From Zygnema circumcarinatum SAG 698-1b (taxonomy: Eukaryota > Plantae > Zygnematophyceae): DNA of 64,000 nucleotides. Positions 22,963-41,009 of this stretch are shown piece after piece. The notes under the pieces are model-generated. The model did not search any database. It had not been told where the DNA came from and saw only the letters and a list, made by a program, of their open reading frames with translations. Numbering within the stretch: the stretch's first letter is position 1; each line of letters begins with the position of its first letter. Where the stretch lies: positions 1,922,001 to 1,986,000 of the forward strand of contig CM074815.1 in assembly GCA_037447605.1 (NCBI GenBank). The letters run 5' to 3'. Position numbers and translations under genes: made by a program.

Positions 22963-23865
22963 AGCTTGGTTGGCAACCAGTCGAATGGTTGCCAACCATT
23001 GGCACCCACTGGTTCCGACCCATTCGAATGCTTGTTTCGATCCGGCGCCAATGGTTGGCAGCCAGTCGAATGGTTGCCAACCATTGGCACCCACTGGTTC
23101 CGACCCATTCGAATGCTTGTTTCATCCGGCGCCAATGGTTGGCAGCCAGTCGAATAGTTGCCAACCATTGGCACCCACCGGTTCCGACCCATTCGAATGC
23201 TTGTTTCGATCCGGCGCCAATGGTTGGCAGCCAGTCGAATGGTTGCCAGCCATTGGCACCCACCGGTTCCGACCCATTCGAATGCTTGTTTCGATCCGGC
23301 GCCAATGGTTGGCAGCCAGTCGAATGGTTGCCAGCCATTGGCACCCACCGGTTCCGACCCATTCGAATGCTTGTTTCGATCCGGCGCCAATGGTTGGCAG
23401 CCAGTCGCATGGTTGCCAGCCATTGGCACCCACCGGTTCCGACCCATTCGAATGCTTGTTTCGATCCGGCGCCAATGGTTGGCAGCCAGTCGAATGGTTG
23501 CCAACATTGGCAACCACTGGTCCCGACCCATTCGAATGCTTGTTTCGATCCGGCGCCAATGGTTGGCAGCCAGTCCAATGGTTGGCAGCCAGTCGAATGG
23601 TTACCAACCATTGGCACCCACTGGTTCCGACCCATTCGAATGCTTGTTTCGATCCGTCGCCAATGGTTGGCAACCAATCGAATGGTTGCCAACCATTTGC
23701 CAACCATTGGCATCCAACAATTCGAATTAGTTGTTTCAATCCGGCGCCAATGGTTGGCAACCGGTCAAACGGTTGCCAACCATTGGCATCCACTCGTCCC
23801 GAACCATTCGAATAGTTGTTTCGATCCAGCGCCAATGGTTGGCAGCCAGTCCAATGGTTGGCCTA
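22963..23865. repeat. Tandem array of about 10 copies of an 85-bp unit, with a 21-bp-stem hairpin formed once per repeat
   Basis: Unit ccattggcacccactggttccgacccattcgaatgcttgtttcgatccggcgccaatggttggcagccagtcgaatggttgccaa. Period 85 (tcgaatggtt at 22981 and 23066). Confidence 0.95.
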
Positions 23866-24375
23866 ATGGTCCGACTTGTGCAAGGCCTCGGGCTTCCCCG
23901 AGCCCTCTTCGTACACTCAGCCACGTGGCGCCCGCCCAGCCCCCCACGTCCACGTGGCAACCCCTTCGCCCGCCGCCGATCGTCGCCACGACCGCGCCCT
24001 GAAGTCCCTATGTTTCCCGTCTGGTCAAGATCCAGTTAGTCATGACTAAAGAAACACGAACCAATCGTGGAGTGACACGTGGCAATCATTTCGCTCTGAT
24101 TGGGCCAAAAAAATGAATTGCCGCATTGATGGGTTCCCGCTGGAAGCGCCTGCGCGCGACACGTGTCCCTGCAGGAGGAGGGTGAGGCCAGAAGCGGGAG
24201 GGAGGCTGCCAGTGGCGCTGAAAGACCTGCAGGGGGTGTGGACTGCCAGCTGGCAGCGTGTCGTACTGCCACGTGGTGCTGCGGAGAGGAGGGAGCCATG
24301 GCCATGGTGAGAGTGGGGATGAGTGCTGCAGGATGAGAAGGTATGGCTGCACGTTAAAAGCTTGAAAACTCAAAA

Positions 24376-24515
24376 TTAGGGTTAGAGGGAGAGTGACGTG
24401 TCGGGAAGATTTGGGTTCAAGAAGAGACTAAAGTTGAGGTCAAAGCTAGAGTTTAAGGTTAGAGTTAGGCTGTGGTAAAAGTTAGAGTCACAGTTTGGAC
24501 TGAGTTTGGATTAGA
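24376..24515 (+). repeat. Degenerate TTAGGG-like hexamer tract
   Basis: ttagggttagag..aggttagagttaggc..agttagag with roughly 6-bp periodicity. Confidence 0.55.
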
Positions 24516-25219
24516 GAGAAATATGGTGTCGTTTTCTTGGGTTTTTTAAATTACTCACTGAAACCGGCAAGAGCGCTTTGAGCTACCTTTCATATGAACA
24601 TGCTGAAAAGAAAATCAGCCAACTGTCGTTTGTGCCCTTTGCCACCATCCTCGCCCTCCTCCCTTCCTCCCTCTGCCCCTCTACAGGCCTTTCTCCTATT
24701 TCTCCGCTCCTTTCCTTCTTAACGTCCGTCTGTATCTCTCCTTCTTCTCATAACTCTTTCCCTCTCCTCTCCTTTTCCTTCTCTCCCCCTCGCCTTCTCC
24801 CTCTCTCCAACCCGCCCCCTCCTCCCCCCCCTTCTCTCTCTGCGTCTCTCTATCTCCCTTTCACTCTCGGCCTCCTACTATCACCATTTTCCGTAAGCAT
24901 GTACCCTTTTGCGTTTCCCTGACAGTAACAGCTCACAAGAAAAACAGCAACACTCAAGCCTATCTCCACTTGTCAGCAGTGTAGGGCCTACTAGCATCTT
25001 TGATCAGGACTTTGAAACAACCACTCTAAGCACTCTTCTAAGCACAGCAGTACTGACAAAAACCCGAACGTGAACAACACTCATTTTAGTGCTGTTAAAG
25101 GTTCGAGTATGAGAGCTACCCTATCTGACATGATCATGATCTTCACATGCACAGCTCTCATTCACGTGCCCATCACATGTAATTTGCGATATTCTCAGGT
25201 GACAGGGAACACAAAACGA

Positions 25220-28200
25220 ATGTCACGGCAGGGTAACATGGCGATCATCAAGCCCGAAATCGACGAGTCTGATGGAAGCCCACAGGAAAGCTTTTCGGTC
25301 AACAGGAAAAGGCCTTTTTGGTGGTGCAATCTGTTTGAAGCTAAAGATGTAGCAGTTTCAATAGTAACCTTCTGCAAAGGCAAAAACCGACATGATGCCC
25401 TTTTGAAGCGATCAAAGACGATCAAAGAGGACGAGGATCTTGTATTTGCCGTAGCAAGTCAATCGGAGGAGGTCTCTTCTGTCGACGATGAGGAGATTCA
25501 TGCAGTGCTTTCTCAATTGTTTAGCGCGGAACGTTTGGCGGATGCTATGACAGCTTCCATTCTAAAGACAATTGAGAAAAAGGGACCGCTTTTATGGGAC
25601 AGCGTCCACATACTTGTCAAAATCGTCATGACGAAGGCATTTGGGCCGTTGGATGAGGTCAGATTTCTCCAAGTTTTGCTTCGTGCAGCACTTGTTAGAC
25701 AGAACAGGATTTGTAGACACTGTCAGTTCAAATGATCTGTTAGCTGAATCCCCTCTCCACTTTTCCAATGCTTGTATTGGACTAGAAACCCAAGCTATAG
25801 CCAAAACTTGAAAGTGTGCATGTGTGCCTGCGTAAATTCACTCCTTAAAAAAACCATTTTTAATGCGCCTGAACCTTTGACGATACGAGACATACCCTTA
25901 GACCTCTAAACCCTTCATCTTTCGAATCAATAAACGGTGCTAAATCTTGCTCTTAGTGTGTGTCTCATGCGTGAAAAGGAGTTTAGAAGGCAATGGAGAC
26001 ATGCAGACTCTTATAATGGCTCTAAATTAACTCCCAGAAGATGGGAATCTTCAAATAAACTTCTTCTCCTGCAGGCCAAGGAGGTCGGAGTAGCCTTCGT
26101 CTTCCAAGCGTGGGCTGAGCATGCTCTGTCAGTGAGAGGACCCTTTAAAGGCCCTCTCGGGGGAGCCCTAAGGGCGATGGCTATCCTGCAAGAACCTCTG
26201 GAGAGGTTGATGACCATGGAGGACCAAGAAGCTTTGCGATCAGAAATAGCAGCATATGTTTCTGAGGTCAGTTTTGTGTGTGTAGACCTCTGAGTGTATG
26301 TGAGCCGAAGTTCGTAATGTGTTTGAGGGGAGTGAGCGAGAGAGAAGGGGGAAGAGGGGGGCGGGGGGGAGGGGGGGGAAGAGTGAATGAGAGGGAAGGG
26401 GGAAGGGGGGGGGGGANNNNNNNNNNGGGGGGGGGGGATGGGAGTGGGGGGGGAGAGTGAATGAGAGGGAAGGGGGAAAGGGGAGGGGGGATGGGAGTGG
26501 GGGGGGAGAGTGAATGAGAGGGAATGGGGATGGGAGTGGGGGGGGGAGAGAATTAGAGGGAAGGGGTCGTCTTGGGGAAAATTGATGGGAATAGGGGAGG
26601 GAGAAGCGTGACAAGTGAGGAGGAACCTGGGAGGAGAGTGAGCCACAAGGAGGGAGGAGATGGATGGGGATAAGGAGGGAAAGGGGTAAACCAAGAGAGG
26701 AGGGAAGGAGAGGAGGCGAAGGGAACAGAAAGTGAGGAAAGTGTCCCTGAGTGGATCACTCTTGTCACATGCAATAGATGTACCCACACGTATATCTTCT
26801 CCTCTCTTCTTCTTCTTTTTTGTTCATAAACACTTGTTTTCTGACTTTTCTCCTCTGTTCCTATGCAGGTTGGCTTGTTTCTGAGAGCCATAACAGAGGG
26901 TAAAAATGTATGCCAAGTTCTAGGACATGTGCCAAATCATAAAGCACTGAAGGCCTATGAAAGCGGACTTATATTGCATTACACAAAGCTATATTTGAGT
27001 GGAGTTCTGAGCGAAGTTAACACTGCTGGAATGAGCCCTGAAGATCACAGAAAGTGGCTTCCGTTTCTCGAAAACCCACAATTTGAAGGGCAGAGGAGTG
27101 TTCTAGATCAACTTGACTTAGGATTAAACCAGGAAAGACTTTCGTCGGTAACGGAAGCAGTGATGAAATTTGAACGCGGATTGTTAGGACCCTCATCAGA
27201 GGTGAGAAACTTAATCCTCAGAAACGTCAAACACCACGTTGTAGTTCGTTGAGCTTAAACAATCATTCAAATGTTAATGCTTTGTGCGATTCTACTCCAA
27301 ATTGTGATGATTTTCAAGTTTGAATGATTTATGGCATTGTCGGATTTGCTATTCAACATGCAGGTGAAAGTTTTAGGGTTGGTGGGTCCTTCCGGAGTGG
27401 GCAAAACTCAAGTAGCTTTGGAGTATTCGCACCTTACAAGGGAGCACTATGAGGCCGTACTATGGCTTGATGCGGAATCTCTCAACCTTCAGGATCAGTT
27501 AGCATCATACAGCGCTGATCTCGGAGTCGAAGTAAGTCATAAAGCAGCATAGGAAACTGCTCATTGGTCATCGCAAAACGTAGATCAGTTTCCAAAGACC
27601 GTCTTACTGATCTTGAATTACTTGCATAGAGCTCTTCGTTTTATATAGTGAAGCGGTTGAAGGAATGTGGGAGAGAGATTGTGTGCAGGTGGAGGAAGGA
27701 GCGACCCTGGATGAGAGAGTAGAGCAAGTTCGGAGTGCACTGGAAACCACTGCTAATGCACTTATTATTGTGGACAATGCGCGAAATTCAGAGATCTTAG
27801 AACCCCTCCTACCAAAGGTAAGATGCTGCAGATTTGGCAACAGTCTCCCTCCTTCTGTTATGGAGATTAGGTCAAGGATAGCACCTTTGCAAACGGACAG
27901 AAAGCGATAGATAGAGAGAGTGGAGGGAGGGGGTATAGAGAGTTGAATGGGAGGAGGAAGGGAGGCGTAATGTTGATGGTGATGATGATTGCAGCTCGGA
28001 CGATCGCACATCCTCATCACTTCTGAATTTGACATCGACCGTGTCTCTTTGGCTATCAATATGGAACCTATGTCTCTGGATGATGCATTGGAGGTATGTT
28101 TATTCGTGTGCTCTTTCATCATGAGAGTTTTTGTTTGAGGAAGTTTCACGTCATCGATAGAAAACCTAGTTTTCAGTTCGTTTACAACCGACACATGCAA

Positions 28201-31200
28201 CTCAGATGATTAACTGCATGCAACCTTCTTCATGTCAATTCTCTCCCTCTCACTTCCCCCCCCCTCCCCTCCCTCTCGTGCTTCGCTATCCACTCCTTCC
28301 CCTTCTTTGCACTCTCCTTCTCTCGATCTCCCTGCCTTTCCACGCCACTCCCCATCTCCTTCCCCTCCTCGTATCTTCTCTCCCTTCTCTGTGTATTCTC
28401 TCTCCTTTCCCCTTCCCCTCCCGTCCTTCTCCCCTGCATCGCTTTCATCTCCTCTACCCTTTTCTCTCTCACTCTCTTTCTAACCCTCCCTGTCTCGTCC
28501 GTTCCCTCCCTTTCCCCTCCCTCTCTCCCTCCCTTTGGCAGCTCCTGCAGGATTCTCTCTTCCCTCTCCTTTCTCTCTCCTTCCCCTCTCATATCCCCTC
28601 CCCCTCTCCCCCCCCTTCACATGTCCTGCAAGATCTTCTTCTCCCCCTCCCTGTCTCTTCCTTCCTTCCCCTCTCTCTCACCCCCTCTCTCTCTCTCTTT
28701 CCCCCTCCCGCAGACCCTTCAAGCTGGTTACCGACAGGATGGAGCGGAGGCCCGTGTGCTTGCAGATATAGCCCATGCTTTGGGCTGCCTCCCTTTCTTT
28801 CTCGCCATTGCAGGAAGGCAACTTGTAGAGGTCGGATTGCAGCCCTCTGAGCTTCTCCGTCTCCTGCAAAAGGACATTCCTTCAGAGTCAGAGAGTATAC
28901 AGGTCGACTGCTCCTTTCAGTCTCCCTCCAGGTTATCTCCCAACTCTCTAATTCCCACAATGTGAAAGCAATAAGAACGTTCGGCTCATGTAGAGCAGCG
29001 GAAAAGTGTTTCAAATGGAGGTCTGGGATTGAGATGTACATCTTCCTTGTTGCGTTTTTCACCACATTTGCAGCATTATGCAAAGTAGCGTAATGTTGTT
29101 CTCAGGTGTAGTTAGTTCCTCCTTCTACCTATGTCCAGTCAGACAAAGTCATCAAAATCCAGTTTTCGGTTGAAATGTAAAGAAGAGATATATGAGGTTG
29201 AAGTGACTGCATGAAGTGACCCATAGCAGCATTTCATGGTGGATTGTTTCGATCTCCCCTTTGTTGGAGGGCAGCATTCGAACGCTATTGGAGGAAGCAG
29301 TGAGCTCTCTCGCAGACAACAGGAGGGAGGATGGCCAGCTGGCAAAAGCAATGGTAGAAGTCTGTGGCTGGTTTGGGGCACAGCCCATTCCTCTCCCGAT
29401 TCTGACAGGGGCTGTCCGTAGATATAGGTAAGTGAATTTCCTGTCTCCCTCCCTCTCTTTTTCTCTCTCTTTCTTTCTCTCCCTCCCACTCTCCCATCCA
29501 CCTCCGAACCTTCCTCCCGGTTGCCCTGCCTTGTCTCCCATCCCGCCCCCCTCTCCCCCTCCCCCTCCTACTCCTCCCTCTCTTTCTCTCTCCAAGCATC
29601 TGATATGACGTTATCCAGACTTGGCCCTCCTTTCAAATCCTCCAGAACTTTTTCAACACTCCTGCGGGAGGCACTGTAAGACCTAGAGAAATCTTGAAAA
29701 TCAAACAGACCATATTTAAAAAAAAAAAAAAAAAAAAATCTTTACAAAACTTAAACCCCAATGTGAAAGTTGTGGTCTAGCAGGGGTCAAGATCCGAACG
29801 AATTCGACGACTCAGATCGTGCAGTTTCCCGCCTTCTAAAAATGGAGCTCGCCCAGCAAGAGCAGGCAGAGGGGTCCATAGTTTTCCATCCCCTCCTTCA
29901 AACTTTTTCTCGAAGTCGAGATTTTGGAGGGGCAGCTGCTGTGGCAGTTTTGAAGACTGTCGCAAATTCTCGATGTTGTGCCGAAACCGCTGACCATTTC
30001 GCTGCGATTTGGGAGAGGAAGGAGGAGTTGGTGAAAACCCATCCAATTGTTTTGGGGAAGGTGTTGGAAGTGGGGTTGAGTTTAGTGAGGTATGGAATCG
30101 ACAAATGGGATGCTCGTGAAGTAACCGATGTATGCGATCAAGTGTTAGAAATGGGTCCGATTATTGGTGAAATCCGACTTCACTTTTGGCAGCTGAAAGC
30201 GGAGATTTTGGGACAGAAAGGAGAGAAGGTAGCTGCTGCCCAGGAAGGTAGAAAATGCTTAAAAGCGATGCATGAAAACTTGGCTTCTGGGCCACTCGGA
30301 CTCTGTGCTTGGGCTGCAATTCTGATTCATGAAGTGGAGGGAAACTTGAAGTCATTAACAGATGCGGTTGATGAATGTGACTTGTTCGAAGAAGAGGCAA
30401 TGGAGCTCGCAGAGGGTGTGAGAGAGAGGGACAGCACAAGACCACTTGGAGAGTTTCAAGCAGTAGATGGAGATGGGGTTCTTGTAGTCGCTGCATTGAA
30501 ATCTATAGGCAAAGTGTATTCCCAAATTCCTGCTCTAAGTATGCAGGCTTTAGCACACGAGCTCACTGTTCTGAAACTCCAAGAGAGGGTTTTGCCAAAA
30601 CTGGACTCAGAAATTTCTGAAACTTGTTGGGGTCTTACTCTGCAGTATGCTGTTCTCGATGATCTATGCTGGCAGCAACAAGTCATATTGGACATTTTCC
30701 AACTCCCATGCGGAATTCTGACAATAGAAAGCAACCATTTGGGGACAGCACAGATGATTGACAGGTGGCAGGTTGTGAGCACACCCTCTTTGGGAGAGCT
30801 TCACTTTGACTTCCGCACGAGAGAGGAGGCAGGGAGAGTGTATGAGAAAGCGATATCTTCCTTAGTACAGAGTAAAGACCCCTCTTCTCTGACATTAAGG
30901 CTTCGCTGTGCTGCATATGCAGCCATGGCTGCTCTCACAAAGCGCCCGAAAGATAGGACTTGGAGGAGATCAGCAATAGCAGCAATAACCCAACTGGAAA
31001 AAGTGTTGGCTGCTTCAAAGGCTGCTAATTTGAAGACTTCAGAGACATATCATGTGGGAGTGTGGAAACTTGGTCTGTTATATGAGAGCATGGACCGGCC
31101 ACTCGAAGCGGAGGAAAGGCTTGCAGAATGGGTCTCATTAGGGCTCATGGATAAGGAAAAGGGGGGGTCATTTAGTAGGCTTGTAACTATGGCCTGCATG

Positions 31201-32245
31201 CTGATCAAACGGGGTAAAGTTACCGATGCTGATTTCATGCTGGAAAAGCGCAAGCAGCTCTTGGAATCGTCGCAAATGGATCGAAATTTCGAGTTGGCCC
31301 AGGTCTTTGCATTAAGTGGAGCAATAAAGTGGCTAAGGGGTCAAGCTGAGGAAGCACAGATGGCTCTCGAAAGGGCTCGAAAATTACTAAGGACATTACA
31401 TGCTCTTTATCCGTTGCAGTTGGCGGATGTTTTGGATGCTCTCGGGAGGGTTTCAGCACATAAGGTGAGAAAGGGGGATTGCAATGAGGCTGGAAATGCT
31501 TCAATCTTGAAAGCTCTTTGCTTGGGTGATAAAATTAAGGATTAGTGGGATTAGAGGATTAGTTTCAAGGCTGATTGAGTTCGAGTTAGGTGAACACATC
31601 ACTAGGACAAGAGCTATAGTTATTGCTAGGATTAGAGTCAGCGTTAGGCCTAGGATCATGGTTAGGCTTGGAGGTAAGGTTAATGTCAGGTTAGAGTAGA
31701 AGTAGAATTAGGGTCAGAGCTGTAGTTAGGGTTAGACTTACAGCTAGGATAAGAGTTATGGTGAAGACTGAAGTTGTGTTTTATGTGTGAGTCATGGTTG
31801 GGACAAGGTCAGGATCAGGGCTAGGTTTGGGTTTTAGGGCTAAGTTAGGGTTGGAATTGGTAGGCTTAGCATTAGGGTGACGGATATAGTTTGAAGTATT
31901 TGATCTTAAGAGTTTTGTGAATCTTATTGCGGACAGGGAGACCATATCCGGGCATTCGACCTATGGCAGCGCGCATTGAGTGCCCGAGAGGAGGTCATTG
32001 GGGAATCGCATCCCTGCCTCGCTTTCACTCTTACCAATATGGCATACATAGAAAAGCAGCTTGGCCGGATACATGCTGCAATGGACTTGAGAGACAAGGC
32101 TCTCCGTCTCATCTCAAAATCATCAGAAACTGACATTGTGCAGTTGCAGCAATTGATCGAAAGACAACTCAGGCGAGTCCCCTGCAGTGCTCTCACTGTG
32201 CTTTATCACAATCCTGTTCTCTGTTCTATTCAATGTGGAGCTTAA
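25220..32245 (+). CDS. STAND NTPase (NB-ARC-like) with C-terminal TPR repeats and an unassigned N-terminal domain; about 10 exons
   Basis: P-loop VLGLVGPSGVGKTQVALEY..YEAVLWLDAE (27364-27531); Walker B LIIVDN; sensor HILITS; GLPL-like LGCLPFFLAIAG; WHD-like VCGWFGAQPIPLPIL; kinesin-light-chain-type TPRs LADVLDALG../ALSAREEVIGESHPCLAFTLTNMAY. The start codon is uncertain. Confidence 0.85.
26417..26426. other. Assembly gap (10 N) in a G-rich intronic tract
   Basis: Run of n flanked by poly-G. Confidence 0.99.
31546..31885 (+). repeat. Degenerate TTAGGG-like tract in the last intron of the NB-ARC-TPR gene
   Basis: Repeated ggttag/ttaggg/gttagg variants (gttagggttagac, aagttagggttgg, attagggtc). 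Confidence 0.7.
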
Positions 32246-33229
32246 TCTTTCAGCTTTCCAATATTGACCCATATTTTCCGACTCTATGATGAACCTTGCG
32301 TTGTGGTTGCAGTGACGAAGCGCTCACAATGCACGCAGAAGAGCAGCCGAGATTATCGCGAGGAGGGCGACAAAGCTTAGAGACAATAGCGGAGGCGGAA
32401 GGCGGGACAGAATAGGCCTTACGGAATTCGTTTTTCGAAAGCAAGTACGGTACATACTATTGATTCCGCCATTACTACTGAAATTGTGGCGGAACTCATA
32501 CTGGCTTTGATTTCAAATGTATGAAACTTTTCTAGGGGGGGGGGGGGGGTCTGACCGAGGCCCCCCTACAACAGGAATAGGCGGTTTCATACTTTGAAAA
32601 GATCGATAGTATTTTTCTACACAGGAAGTCGTGATTCAATTTTTGGCTTCCGAAAGTGTAGAGCTTTTCTAAGTTTATGACTGAAACCCCTCTTAGAGGG
32701 GGTCACTGAAATGTACAGCACTGCTGCTGGCTGGGGGGGGGGGGGCTGGCTCCATAATTTTGGCGATTTCAGCATGGAGCCAATGTTTAGCATCTTCCGG
32801 GATTCAGACACGCAGCTTGTGGGGCACAGTGTGTATCTATTTTGATTTCAGGTTTAAAATAAAAACACTATCGCTGCAATACTTTGAATACGTTTGTAAG
32901 TTATAATTTCTACGCTCGTTTTACGGCTTTGTATTGGCCTCCATCATCATCAGCGCTGGCCAAACTTTTTGACAGCTCTCTTATCAATCAAAGAGATAGA
33001 TGAAAGCCACCTGACTATCTATGATCTGAATACACATGCAGCACAAGAAAAGAAAACGATGATTGAAACTGAGAGCAGAAAACATATGAAGGAGACAACC
33101 GAACAATTGGAATTAGACTCGTAAGGGTTTTCTCCTCAAGCGAGATCTCCTTTCAAAAAAATCTCAGCCCACTTCTGTACAGATTTCTCAGTCGTGCATC
33201 AAGACATGGGCAAACTCTGCTTGAGCTTT

Positions 33230-33595
33230 TCAAGACTCCTTTGCCTCCTTAATCTGCTGCTGAACCTCCTCCGCCGAAACATTATCAGAAACAGCAAACG
33301 GATTCACATATTGGTCGTCCAGTGGCCTTCCCTTCAGATCACTCCGCATGGCTCCTTCAGGATGAGTTGCAAACTGAGCGCCTTCCTTTGCAGATTCTGC
33401 CCTTACTTGTCCCCCTTTCCGGCCCATCTCTGCATAGCCTTCGTGACCAAGCTGCTGTTTACGAGTCTCGCCTCCCTTTCTCCCTCCTTCCCTGATGCGT
33501 TCCTCCGCTTCCTCCGCCTGCTCCCAGGTCTGCCCTAACTGAAACTGAGGGCCATGCTCATCCTTCAGCTTGTCCATAGACGAATGCGATGTCAT
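33230..33595 (-). CDS. Group 1 LEA / Em-like hydrophilin (LEA_5, KGG motif), 121 aa
   Basis: REGGRKGGETRKQQLGHEGYAEMGRKGG matches the Em 20-mer motif. The CDS is intronless and hydrophilic. Confidence 0.88.
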   Translation of the reverse strand: MTSHSSMDKLKDEHGPQFQLGQTWEQAEEAEERIREGGRKGGETRKQQLGHEGYAEMGRKGGQVRAESAKEGAQFATHPEGAMRSDLKGRPLDDQYVNPFAVSDNVSAEEVQQQIKEAKES

Positions 33596-35923: not shown

Positions 35924-38900
35924 TCACACTAATCGGCTTTGGGCCCTCTCAATGGGCCCTTCTGCCACATCAGCAACCTTTGCTCTCATCCTGAACCTCT
36001 CCAGCATGTTCCCACCCTTCTGCTTCTCTTTGAGAGGGGGAGGCTTGCTGCTACTTGCTGCAGCCGAAGAGCCTTCGTCGACTCTCCAGGCGAGAGCCTC
36101 ACTCATGGCGATCGCCTTCATCTCAGCCTCCTCCCTCTTCCTCTCCAACTCTCTCACCTTCGCCTCCAGTTCCTTCCTCTTCGCAACTTCCGTCTCCAGC
36201 GCAGTCATTGTGGCATTTATCTTAGTCTGCTCTTCCGCGAGCCCTTGATCTCCGGACGTTGTTTGTTCAGAAACTAGGTATATCTGCAAAAGGAATTTCA
36301 TTGTCACATGATTAGGAGAAGGAATAGCTTCGAAATACGTTGAAAACCTAACTGAACTATTTTTTAAGAGGATTGAAGTCCTTGTTTTAAAGCATTTATC
36401 CTCTTTCAAGCAACTCCCTTTCTTTTCACACATACTTGCTCAACAGTGTTCCTCTCGAAATCACTATTCTCGTCCATCGCATCACTTCCACTCCGTTTCG
36501 CGCAAATGTCTCCCTTCAGCCTCTTCAATTCCAGCTCCAACTCCTGCACCTTCTTCTGAAGCTCCAGTTCTCTTTTCCCGTGCTTCATCGTTTGCTCCCC
36601 TTCCTTTCCTTCTCCTTCTACTCTCTGCCCCTCGTCCTGGATTTGAAATCCTCTCATGTCCTCCAATTTCACCTCCGGCAAACCACTATAGATATCATCT
36701 GCACTTCCCTCCGAAACATTAATCCTGCCTTCCGCTACCGCACTCGTTTCCTCCTTCAACGATTCTCCCATCTTTTCAATCTCTGCTCCAATCGTCAAAA
36801 TCTTCCTCATTTCTTCCTCCAAAACTTGCTCTACATGAGATCGCCTCCCTCTCTCATTCATCGCGGCAGCTTCCGCAACTGCTAGTTTCTCATCCCACTG
36901 TAAGCATCTCTTTTCAGATATCTCTAACTGCTGCTGAAGTTCAATTTCTTTCTTCACAGCAGCTTCTCTCAAAGCCTCTGCCTCTGCAGCAGCTTTCTCC
37001 TTTCCTACGACCTCTTTCTGCAATTCTGCAATGTTTGCGTCCATGGATTTTATCCTCACCTCTCTTTCTCTCAACTTCTCCTCCAACTCGATAATCACTC
37101 TCTGCCATTCTGTGAGCCTTTTCTCTGTTTCTGCCTGCTTCAAGGCATCCTGAGCCCTCAAAGACAGCAATTCCTTGACCCTCTCTTCCGCATCATGTTT
37201 CCTCCCCTCTTCTGCCATGGCTGAGATCTCCGCCTTCGCCCGTCGCTTACTCTCCTCCATAGCTCTCCCTTCTGCCAAACCTTTCATTCTCTCGGCTTCC
37301 TTCCTCATCTTCTCCTCTTCCTTCCTAATTCTCATCTCCTCCTTTCCGAACGCTTCAGCTTTTCCCCTCTTCTCGCTTTCCTCCTTCACTTTCAATTCCA
37401 GTGCAGTTCTTTTCTTTTCTTCCTCCCCAAACTTCAACTGCAATTCTTTCCTCAGCTTCTCTTCTGCCTTTGCTTTGCTCTCCTCCTCCCTCCTCAGTTT
37501 CTGCTCCTCGACAAGCATAGCCTCCGCTTTCCCTCTCCTCTCCCTGTCCTCCGCAGCCCTCCTCTCAATTTCCCCATTCTTTCTCCTCTCCTCGATTAGC
37601 GCCAATTCTGATCTCTCCCTCTTTCCGTCTTCCACGAGCAACCTCATTTCTGCCTCTTCTCTCCTCTTTCTCTCCTCTATCAACTCCTCCTCTATCTCTC
37701 GTCTCATATCCTCTGCCTCTGTCGCCATATGCATTGCATCATTCATCTGATTTTCAAGAATCCGTCTGTGTCCTTCCTCCGCTCTTCGTCGTTTTTCTTC
37801 CTCTGCGAATCGCAGCTCACTCTCTGCTCTTTTCTTCTGCTCAGTTAAAAGCCTATTTTCAGTTTCTTGCCTCTTCTTGTTCTCCTCAGTCCATTTCGCT
37901 TGTGCTTCAGATAACGCATTTTCCAAAGATTCTACCTTAGCAGCTGCCTGTCGAGCTGCAATTTCGTCGTACGCTTTACTCACAGAAGTTTCCGCTCTCT
38001 TCACAGCAGCAACCTGAGAGATAGTTTCTTGGACCTTTGCAGCCATCTGCAGCCACCACTTTTCTAAAATAAACTCAACTCATGTCTACGTTGACTGAGA
38101 AGTGAAATTTTTACCTTGACTGCCATTCCAGAGATGAGTTTCAACAAACATTTTTTGTTTTCAATCATGGACAGAGTTTCAAAATCACTGTTAGAAATAA
38201 AGGTGATAATCAGAACAGAATTTCCTTGGTTAAAAAACTTAAAACTCGAATAACATGGCCGTGGGGTTAAAGCTGGTCACTCACAGAAGCACTTGTCTTG
38301 ACTGTGTGCCCGTGACGTTGAGAAATAATATGTGCGATGTCGTGACGTTTTGCCTTTTCTGCTAATTTAAGAGCAGTGCTGCCATCCTGGGAAACAACAG
38401 AAAGCCAGTTTACAAGTAATCTGCTTATCAAATGCATAATTTTTTGCTGCTTCTGTATCTGCTATACCTGCTATCGATATTAACTACATACGATCTCCTT
38501 CTCTCCTTCTCATACCCTCTTCTCCAACCCCCATTGCCTCCCATAATCCACCCACTCTGTTCCCTCCAGCCTTTTCAAGCTCTCGTCTTCCCTCTTTCTT
38601 CCACCCTACTTCCTCGTCGGACCCTTGCAATCGTTCATTTCCCCTCTTTCTCGTTGTCCATGAAATGTTTCCATCTTGCGTTCTCTCTCGCCTTCCTTTT
38701 GTTTCACAATCTCTTCTTTCCTCTGCCTCTTTCCTCCTCTCCCATACAGTCTTCGTTTCCCTCCGTTTCTAAGCCACTTTTCCCTTCCTCTCCCCAAATT
38801 CCTTTCACTTCCTGTTCCTTGTCCATCGGATGCACTCACTCCGTCGTTTCCCTGCACCTCACTACGTCACCTATCTCTCTCTCTCCTCTACCTCCGCTTT

Positions 38901-41009
38901 TGAGACATTATTGGCATCAATTGTGTATGCATAAAATTCATTGCAGCAAGAAAAGTTTGAATATTTTTCTCACCTTTGTCTTTGCAAACTTGTCCGCCCC
39001 TCTCTGGAGGAGCACCTTCACTATCTCCACCGACCCAAAAGCAGACGCGCAGTGAAGTGGAGTAAAAAATTTCTGACATTTTTGAGAATCCAAAAAGAAA
39101 AACATACATGTTTCAGTACATCTACATAGTAATTTGCCAATAAAGAAAGGCAGTTGGGCTTCAGAGGCAAACAGGAGATTTACCTGGTCACGCGCGTCAG
39201 GGTTTGCGCCAGATTCCAACAACATGATCAGTTCCACTATGCGACCCCGCATGGCTGCGAGATGGAGCGCAGTCTGCCCCTCCTGCAGCTCACATTGATT
39301 GAAACAAGTTAAGTAGCTTGCTCTCTGTAGCCATGCGAAAGCTATCTTTTGAAAAAGGCATTGGAGAGGGAAAATTTTGCTCCCTGAGAAGCAGAGATGT
39401 GGTCCATGTGTTGCTGTCCGTGAAGAGGAGGGCGAGAGGGAGGGGAGGATGGGGGGAGGGAGATGGGGGGGGGGGGAAGAGGAGGAGTTGGGGAGGAAAG
39501 AGAAGCGAAAATTGACCTGATCTTCTGCATCCAGGTCAATGCCTCGCTCAATCAAAGCCTTCACAACACCGGTACCTCCTCCCCACACGGCATAGTGAAG
39601 GGCTGTCCATCGTCCCTGAAAAGGGCCGCACCGTCTTCAGAACCGAAAATCCCAAAACAAATCCTAAAAGCAGAAATATCCGCTTCATGCAGTCTCTTGA
39701 AATGCTCACAAGGTAATCTTTTTCGTGCTGAACTACTGCATTCTACACCTAACACAAAACTTGATATTTCAATTACAATTGATTGGCCAGTTTTAGATCA
39801 GAGTTCTGGATCATAGGGTTACTTGTCGAATCTGTTTGCGAGACGGTATAAACGCGGTAGTATGAAATGGAAGAATGTACATAAACATGTCATAAGGTCA
39901 ACGTAAAACACCCCCCTTAAATGATGGAGTTATGTACCGTACAGCCCTTACGGCTTGCAAAATATGAACTGAAACGTGCATACCGACTTATCGCGAGCTT
40001 CTGCTTTGGCTCCCTTGGTAAGTAAGATATCGATCATTTTGTCATTTCCAAGAATGGCCGCTGCTTGGAGTGGTGTGTGCCCCTCCTGATTCCCCAACGT
40101 TGCAAACGGAAATGACTCAGTACCTGCCTTGAAGCGTTTTTTTTCCTTTCTTGAAATCTCAAGACAGATAGCTTGCCACATATGGCACATGTATTTTAAG
40201 TGCCCAGCATATATCCTCACGGCACGTATTACAAAGCGATGGAGGTGCCTGGCTTAATTTTTGAAAATGGACAGTCTCATTGGTCCTGACAAGCATAGCA
40301 ATGTGGCCAATGTCTTTGGCACCTTAACCAGCACGAAAATAGAATGTTAGAAAACACCACCCGGAAACAGACACAGCGCTTCGATATATAGCCTCATCCG
40401 TGCCGTATTTACGTCACAAAGCCATTTCAGCGCAATGCCTCAATTTGCTGCAAAGTCTATTGCTTAATTTTTTGGAATAGACTATGTAAGTACTGCTTAC
40501 AGCGTCCAACGCTTCAGTATCTGCGCCCTTGTCAAGCAGTCGCAGTAAATCTGACACTTGTCCGTCTCGTATGCTCTGGTGAACGGCTTCTGTCAGCGCC
40601 GCCTGAAAAGGAGGACACGAACATAAAAAATTAAGCTTCAACAATAAATATTCAGATAAATGCATGCAAGTGAGGTTTCAATATCATGTCGGTCCTGCCT
40701 GTAGCGGTTTGCCTTCTGCACTTTATCAAACACCTTGTGGCAAATCTGTCGAATTGAGACAGCTTCAGAAATTATTATTTCTTCAATTCACGCACACCAA
40801 TAATTCTACTCGATCTGTCTCCAAATCTCCAATATTATATCGGATAACCGATCCACGTATTTAAGACTTGGAGACGGAGTGAAAGAGCAGAGTGAAACGA
40901 GTGTATAATTATAAAAATAAGAAAAAAAATGATGAATTTTTCATTTCCTGCTATGTTCTCTCCTACTGCACATTATAATTCTCAATAAAAATAAGCTTAC
41001 CATAGTCAT
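35924..41009 (-). CDS. Ankyrin-repeat protein with a long E/K/R-rich coiled-coil C-terminus
   Basis: Ankyrin exons AALTEAVHQSIRDGQ..GADTEALDA (40501-40602), EGHTPLQAAA, GRWTALHYAV, EGQTALHLAA, KFFTPLHCAS and DGSTALKLAE, followed by the 546-aa charged helical ORF (36406-38046) and a final exon ending at 35924. The start (MTM at 41009) and the ankyrin-to-coiled-coil junction are inferred. Confidence 0.75.

Follow-up and report, generated by a model that had tools for sequence, protein, structure and literature searches.

Proteins in which an NB-ARC nucleotide-binding module is followed by TPRs are common in bacteria and fungi (PMC4986451, PMC9806590), and in land plants this combination is that of the TIR-carrying TNPs (PMC9806590). 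We describe here a gene of this NLR-like architecture in Zygnema circumcarinatum SAG 698-1b, which lies in a stretch of 64,000 nucleotides (assembly GCA_037447605.1, contig CM074815.1, positions 1,922,001 to 1,986,000 of the forward strand) that we refer to as the window and from whose first letter all positions are counted. Bacteria, fungi and brown algae are already known to have the NB-ARC-TPR layout, and it is only the orphan helical head preceding it that lacks a family assignment. The gene provides a clean expressed model and, for streptophyte algae, a well-supported instance of an architecture on which reviews only touch.

The best sequence match of the nucleotide-binding module is to the AfsR or FxSxx-COOH type of NB-ARC-TPR protein (PDB 8k60 and 8jke; NF040586), in which NB-ARC and TPRs stand in the same order, although that type is bacterial and the window gene is a spliced eukaryotic one. 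The Walker B D-N-A-R of AfsR and the PLLP that follows it are also found in the window protein, and the arginine of AfsR LVTAR is a glutamate in the corresponding ILITSE, as it is in VTTEN of the plant TNL ADR2 in the same alignment. AfsR carries an N-terminal SARP DNA-binding part, whereas the window protein has in its place a helical bundle without a family match. The plant TNPs are likewise NLR-like, belong to the plant lineage and carry C-terminal TPRs instead of LRRs after the NB-ARC, as does the window protein, and their NB-ARC is considered by the authors to be akin to those of actinobacterial and fungal NB-ARC-TPR proteins (PMC9806590). However, TNPs have a TIR, and exons 1-3 of the window gene are without a detectable one; TNP orthologues are reported to be absent from Klebsormidium and Chara (PMC9806590).

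The fungal NB-ARC-TPR NLRs, whose domain repertoire has been described (PMC4986451), share with the window protein a tripartite layout and a helical, lineage-specific head (Goodbye-like, HeLo-like or HeLo), although no hidden Markov model of the Goodbye/HeLo families matches the window exons or the heads of their relatives, and what links them is a language-model lead scoring below 0.9. In the brown alga Ectocarpus, a family of NB-ARC-TPR proteins has been proposed as defence receptors, with each TPR on its own exon and with genes that are clustered and shuffled (PMC3341825). The architecture is the same and the organism is again an alga, but the lineage is unrelated, and in the window gene about 560 residues of repeats are encoded by a single 1.7-kb exon, with no paralogue in the 64-kb window. 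A review attributes to streptophyte algae NLR-like receptors whose C-terminal repeats are of alternative kinds and which carry TIRs or four-helix bundles resembling CC/RPW8, and it describes a MAEPL motif at the N-terminus of the CC domains of non-flowering plants (PMC10952240).

Gene structure and transcripts

In the genomic letters the gene is a series of forward-strand open frames with low-complexity introns between them. The gene is real, spliced and transcribed; it has 11 or 12 exons and 10 or 11 introns, and it is single-copy in the 64-kb window, where it has no second copy and is not part of a tandem cluster. Contigs from four public RNA runs (two studies) were aligned to positions 24800-30799, and from 25220 through exon 9 the spliced contigs of all four runs match the genome joint by joint, with GT..AG borders throughout and 0 mismatches. 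We regard these contigs as transcripts because the introns are absent from them, those at 25658-26074, 26267-26868, 27202-27363, 27532-27688, 27818-27994, 28932-29274 and 29428-29783 each being skipped at GT..AG. Since exons 1-9 are found whole on single contigs of 3,966-4,111 nt, the N-terminal exons are co-transcribed with the NB-ARC module and the large TPR exon. The contig joint that follows exon 6 was lost at a repeat; for exon 6 itself (27995-28093) there are 100 unplaced contig letters, which fit it and stand between the pieces for exons 5 and 7. Exon 9 is complete in five runs, from two studies whose sampling conditions are coded.

The sole assembly gap in the window (N at 26417-26426) lies inside intron 2 (26267-26868), in a G/A-rich tandem repeat. 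This intron is skipped at GT..AG in four runs, and exon 2 is joined to exon 3 in phase 0, so that the coding frame is untouched by the gap and only the length of the intron is affected. The frame stays open in every exon, with exact splice sites. The features of the gene, all on the forward (+) strand, are as follows, with the evidence for each.

24170..24340 (+): 5' untranslated exon; 5' end approximate; in-frame TGA and two short upstream ATGs
24341..25198 (+): intron in the 5' untranslated region; GT..AG, 858 nt
25220..25657 (+): coding exon 1, 146 residues, about 90 acidic and probably disordered residues and then the first helices of the bundle; transcript piece 25197-25655, joint to 26075
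26075..26266 (+): coding exon 2, 64 residues, middle of the helical bundle; contig joints; tiles on P0001 at about 150-195
26267..26868 (+): intron 2, G/A-rich repeat with the gap; skipped in four runs; tandem repeats at 26356-26566
26869..27201 (+): coding exon 3, 111 residues; contig joints; about 52 residues of bundle end, then linker and pre-P-loop segment (FEGQ motif)
27364..27531 (+): coding exon 4, P-loop GPSGVGKT; Pfam NB-ARC 20.6 bits; FxSxx_TPR profile positions 30-71, E 7.6e-10
27689..27817 (+): coding exon 5, Walker B LIIVDNAR; contigs, FxSxx_TPR and AfsR alignment
27995..28093 (+): coding exon 6, RNBS-B-like ILITSE; 100 unplaced contig letters and alignment to relatives
28714..28931 (+): coding exon 7, GLPL-like GCLPFFLAIAG (helical domain 1); contigs, alignment and FxSxx_TPR
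29275..29427 (+): coding exon 8, start of the winged helix, WFGAQPIP; contigs; motif common to P0001, P0002 and P0005
29784..31464 (+): coding exon 9, 560 residues, MHD-like VFHPLLQ and then TPR-like alpha-solenoid; five runs, AF2 and Foldseek, weak TPR_12
31465..31936 (+): intron 9, GT..AG, inferred from P0003 homology, outside the read-aligned stretch
31937..32172 (+): coding exon 10, kinesin-light-chain-type TPR_12; TPR_12 E 5.5e-4, FxSxx_TPR E 1.8e-5, P0003 alignment
32173..32312 (+): intron 10, probable GC-AG, homology only
32313..32415 (+): probable last coding exon, 34 residues, stop TAG at 32413-32415; ungapped alignment to the P0003 tail

At the 5' end, the contigs of all four runs carry 103-169 loose letters before 25197, the final 30 of which match 24309-24338 uniquely; a GT donor lies just after this segment, at 24341, and the two observations together place a 5' untranslated exon and an 858-nt intron upstream of the coding sequence. 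Because the spliced 5' untranslated exon has an in-frame TGA, the ATG at 25220 is taken as the start. At the 3' end the evidence comes from P0003, a fragment of a closer relative (54-56% identity) that derives from a transcript and is contiguous; it reads straight over the exon 9/10 junction, its residues 1-92 corresponding to residues 469-560 of exon 9 and its residues 93-170 to residues 1-78 of exon 10. The genomic frame that runs on past exon 10 to a stop at 32245 has no similarity to P0003, and this unspliced tail does not align. Joining a GC donor at 32173 to an AG acceptor at 32312 gives a 34-residue exon that lies ungapped on the P0003 tail at the very next residue (z 4.0, a score that 2 of 1000 shuffles reach). 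The alignment suggests that the gene probably ends at 32415, by way of a GC-AG intron that bypasses the stop at 32245; if intron 10 were retained, the frame would continue to that stop. The protein probably has about 1,240-1,250 residues, about 1,249 with the end at 32415 and 1,239 with the stop at 32245.

An earlier note, made from the letters of the window alone, had proposed a gene running from 25220 to 32245, intron-rich and hence long resident, and had named separate transcription of the exons and an unexpressed pseudogene among the outcomes that would speak against it. The contigs that cover exons 1-9 without a mismatch show expression and co-transcription, and the in-frame TGA of the spliced 5' untranslated exon agrees with the note on the start. 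With 10 or 11 introns the gene is not a recent arrival, which accords with long residence in that sense. Its end at 32245 is probably wrong, in that the P0003 tail fits only the spliced reading to 32415. Two exon borders are also not where a reading by eye would put them, since exon 7 runs to 28931 and exon 8 begins at 29275.

Three of the introns, 2, 6 and 8 (26267-26868, 28094-28713 and 29428-29783), are G/A- or C/T-rich low-complexity repeats. In one RNA run (X1), unrelated transcript contigs share these repeats at high depth and give spurious joints, for example from 28532 to 29548. Another run (X2) has a low-depth contig of 214 nt at 29005-29218, inside intron 7, which may be a retained intron, pre-mRNA or DNA carry-over.

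The NB-ARC module and the TPR-like region

All searches and folds of the window sequence were done exon by exon. A search with exon 9 found seven proteins in 1.84 billion representatives, the best of them at 30% identity, and the window protein itself is absent from the protein collections, where the best stored match is 30% identical. The relatives used most below are P0001 (1,227 residues, 30% identity, a Logan transcript), P0002 (1,502 residues, N-terminally truncated) and P0005 (1,594 residues, from a EukProt transcriptome). Exons 2-10 tile along P0001 in order and without overlap. In a word search with the NB-ARC of P0005, the nearest named relative was a deltaproteobacterial TPR protein with 29% identity. 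A metagenome contig of 4,707 nt in ENA also holds a homologue fragment that matches exon 8 and three parts of exon 9, the matches being broken by intron-like stretches within a region that is a single exon in the window gene.

The three motifs from which the earlier note had read an intact STAND module are all in place, GPSGVGKT in exon 4, LIIVDN in exon 5 and LGCLPFFLAIAG in exon 7 (28714-28931). GPSGVGKT has the Walker A form GxxxxGK[ST] and aligns to the P-loops of AfsR and ADR2, ALIIVDNAR in exon 5 is a Walker B motif, a hydrophobic strand that ends in Asp, and aligns to VLVLLDNAR of AfsR, and GCLPFFLAIAG in exon 7 is a GLPL-type motif aligning to the PLA(I/V) of P0005, P0001 and AfsR. Further on, VFHPLLQ in exon 9 is kept in all long relatives, its counterpart being FHP.LQ in P0001 and P0005 and AHALLQ in P0002, and we take it to be the MHD-type motif with which the winged helix ends. 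The order of the motifs along P0005 and P0001 is that expected for an NB-ARC. We considered that LIIVDN and ILITSE might be degenerate ATPase motifs and rejected this, since D-N-A-R is also the sequence of AfsR, and VTTEN stands in ADR2 where the window protein has ILITSE.

Profile searches point the same way. Exon 4 alone, a short single-exon query, scores 20.6 bits against Pfam PF00931 (gathering threshold 23.5) and P0005 scores 33-36 bits, and P0001 has no Pfam NB-ARC match. The NCBIfam profile FxSxx_TPR (NF040586) matches exons 4, 5, 7 and 10 at ascending profile positions, and it matches P0001 at E 8.5e-37 and P0005 at E 6e-46; the scores (127 bits for P0001, 157 for P0005 and 14.6-37.9 for each window exon) are all below the equivalog cut-off of 300, which places these proteins near that family and outside its membership. 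A profile of the family searched against PDB finds AfsR at E 8.9e-14, plant ADR2 at 1.9e-3 and NRC1 at 0.059. PADLOC, with its models of Avs and other anti-phage STAND proteins, gave no match beyond the P-loop level (E 0.004 or weaker). Judged by sequence, the NB-ARC module is of the bacterial AfsR/FxSxx type (that is, of the bacterial and fungal NB-ARC-TPR proteins) rather than of the plant NLR type.

In the C-terminal region, Pfam TPR_12 matches weakly at the end of exon 9 and at E 5.5e-4 in exon 10, and nowhere else. The AF2 model of exon 9 (mean pLDDT 61.5) is all-helical, its roughly 25 helices being arranged in hairpins, and it is confident in blocks at residues 70-215, 230-280, 360-440 and 470-560. 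Foldseek with this model returned 72 PDB matches at E<=0.001, of which the best 50 are TPR or TPR-like helical-repeat solenoids (OGT, LGN, APC/C subunits, Ski3, Ctr9 and consensus TPR). The C-terminal 600 residues or so are thus modelled as a TPR-like solenoid that ends in TPR_12 repeats of the kinesin-light-chain type, within about 40 residues of the more than 600 that had been proposed by eye, and the motifs, the FxSxx_TPR profile and the TPR-like fold together support the proposed NB-ARC-TPR (NLR-like) architecture. There is no match to an LRR family, and the protein differs in this from canonical plant NLRs, in which LRRs occupy the place of the solenoid.

The N-terminal head

Upstream of these motifs, some 320 mostly helical residues had been set apart in the earlier note as resembling neither TIR nor CC. 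The dissimilarity stands, and the length is reduced, because the last 55 residues or so of exon 3 (around FEGQRSVLDQL) are the pre-P-loop segment of the NB-ARC, which leaves a head of about 265 residues. In the relatives, the F-x-G segment that is the counterpart of FEGQRSVLDQL aligns to the AfsR pre-P-loop and to the FxSxx profile; exon 3 itself lies outside that alignment. The head probably begins with about 90 acidic and disordered residues, followed by a helical bundle of about 170.

None of the family searches recognised it. Exons 1-3 contain no TIR or any other Pfam family at E<=0.1, and the heads of the relatives (residues 1-290 of P0001 and 1-380 of P0005) contain none at E<=10, TIR included; the Goodbye- and HeLo-like families PF17109, PF24809, PF17111 and PF14479 were found neither in the relatives' heads at E<=10 nor in exons 1-3 at E<=0.1. 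NCBIfam and PADLOC gave no match for the N-terminal region, and PDB sequences searched with a profile of the head yielded chance matches only (E>=0.4). The head contains no recognisable CC (Rx_N), RPW8 or TIR domain and no first helix of the MADA or MAEPL type. For exon 1, a word search was blank and the ESM Atlas had no usable match, and a word search with residues 1-295 of P0001 returned P0001 itself only.

The alignments indicate that conservation of the head within the family sets in at the end of exon 1 or with exon 2. When exons 1-3 were compared with P0001, BLASTP found nothing, and Smith-Waterman alignment with shuffles then rescued exon 3, which matches residues 196-290 of P0001 with z 5.4, a score reached by 0 of 300 shuffles. 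MAFFT puts exon 2 directly before exon 3 on P0001 (at about 150-195) and on P0005, so that the exon 2/3 junction corresponds to contiguous sequence in the relatives. Among the relatives retrieved, the orphan helical head is common to two transcriptome proteins.

The fold of the head was modelled on residues 1-300 of P0001 by AF2 with a small family alignment. In this model, about six helices of 18-30 residues each make up a bundle at residues 80-240 (pLDDT 70-91), and residues 1-80 are of low confidence. The likeness of this bundle to the four-helix bundles of NRG1 CC-R and MLKL does not exceed a level that is common for helical proteins. Language-model features of P0001 residues 70-260 lead to clusters of fungal STAND N-terminal Goodbye/DUF7708 domains with scores of 0.78-0.83, which weakly suggests a resemblance to fungal Goodbye domains; we treat this as a lead only, one that no hidden Markov model match backs. 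A BTAD domain, as in AfsR, was also considered for the head and was rejected, since no BTAD match was obtained and the 50 structural matches listed include neither an EmbR nor an AfsR chain.

Possible functions and genomic surroundings

The gene product is very probably an expressed NB-ARC-TPR protein of the STAND class. By analogy with its family, the protein may sense a ligand and oligomerise, and we lean, with some reservation, towards a mechanism in which the head is the output of an oligomerising switch. The TPR solenoid would bind the ligand and would keep the NB-ARC closed, ligand binding would permit nucleotide exchange and oligomerisation, and oligomerisation would gather the N-terminal bundles as the output, perhaps as a membrane-active four-helix bundle in the manner of CC-R, MLKL or HeLo domains. 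An immune or cell-death role, with the head as an effector or signalling domain, would rest on the same analogy; cell death within this mechanism is a possible but tentative outcome. The most specific form of the proposal would make the head an executioner domain of streptophyte algae that has so far escaped description, a counterpart in the plant lineage to the Goodbye/HeLo-like heads of fungi, carried on an AfsR-type chassis and defining a further green-lineage class of NLR-like protein beside CNL/RNL, TNL and TNP, which we think unlikely. If the head does prove to be a death or signalling domain, algae near the land plants would use NB-ARC-TPR receptors of fungal and bacterial style with an output domain of their own, and this would have a bearing on how intracellular immunity came together in plants ahead of their move to land.

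A number of observations weigh against the oligomerising switch with the head as its output. AfsR, the closest solved relative, is a transcription regulator and not a killer. The folded head is that of P0001, a relative with 30% identity, and not that of the window protein, exon 1 could be aligned to P0001 by neither BLASTP nor Smith-Waterman, and the head model itself found no match with Foldseek on PDB or in an Atlas fold search. The Atlas feature scores are below 0.9, a level often reached by shuffled proteins. In P0001, an otherwise conserved and transcribed homologue, residues 302-309 read APSGYEKS against GPSGVGKT in the window protein, a degenerate P-loop, and ATP binding is therefore not conserved family-wide.

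Some of these points would suit a somewhat unlikely alternative, in which the STAND switch is the same and the head is an adaptor or regulatory domain, acting by recruitment of a partner through homotypic or heterotypic binding or by AfsR-like regulation, and not an executioner. The solved protein nearest by sequence is a regulator, the head has no match to a pore-forming or enzymatic family, the protein starts without the MAEPL motif (PMC10952240), and the head evolves fast, exon 1 being unalignable to P0001. However, no DNA-binding, BTAD or other adaptor family matches the head either, and the CC-R and MLKL bundles are among its best structural look-alikes. We consider it improbable that the protein is a housekeeping NB-ARC/TPR scaffold with a task unrelated to defence, such as cytoskeletal, ciliary or stress signalling. 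Its TPRs are of the kinesin-light-chain/nephrocystin-3 type (TPR_12 and TPR_NPHP3 matches), the gene is single-copy in the window and outside any tandem cluster, it is expressed in five runs from two studies whose sampling conditions are coded, and it has a cluster of G-boxes at its promoter and an LEA gene as a neighbour, all of which would fit such a role, but a family this small and fast-evolving, with seven matches in 1.84 billion representatives and at best 30% identity, is unlike conserved scaffolds. That transcription is all that is left to a decaying or non-functional relic is very improbable: although P0001 lacks the P-loop consensus and the 3' end of the gene model is uncertain, the frame is open in all exons with exact splice sites, the contigs are in full agreement with the genome, and none of the core motifs is broken.

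The surroundings of the gene include several further features. Five CACGTG (G-box) sequences lie within 354 bp (23922-24275), at the promoter and the 5' untranslated exon; window-wide there are 35 such sequences against 7.6 expected, mostly clustered near gene starts. About 300 bp upstream of the first exon is an 85-bp satellite (22967-23860) of more than ten copies, 7.4 of them at 96% identity and others more diverged, which also reads as a repetitive open reading frame of 337 residues. Tail-to-tail with the NB-ARC-TPR gene is an LEA group 1/Em-like gene on the reverse strand (33230-33595 (-); Pfam LEA_5 at 45.9 bits, the cut-off being 40). Beyond it, also on the reverse strand, are a 546-residue open reading frame for a Glu/Lys/Arg-rich coiled coil, without a Pfam family, at 36406-38046 (-), and then ankyrin-repeat exons at 38938-40220 (-).

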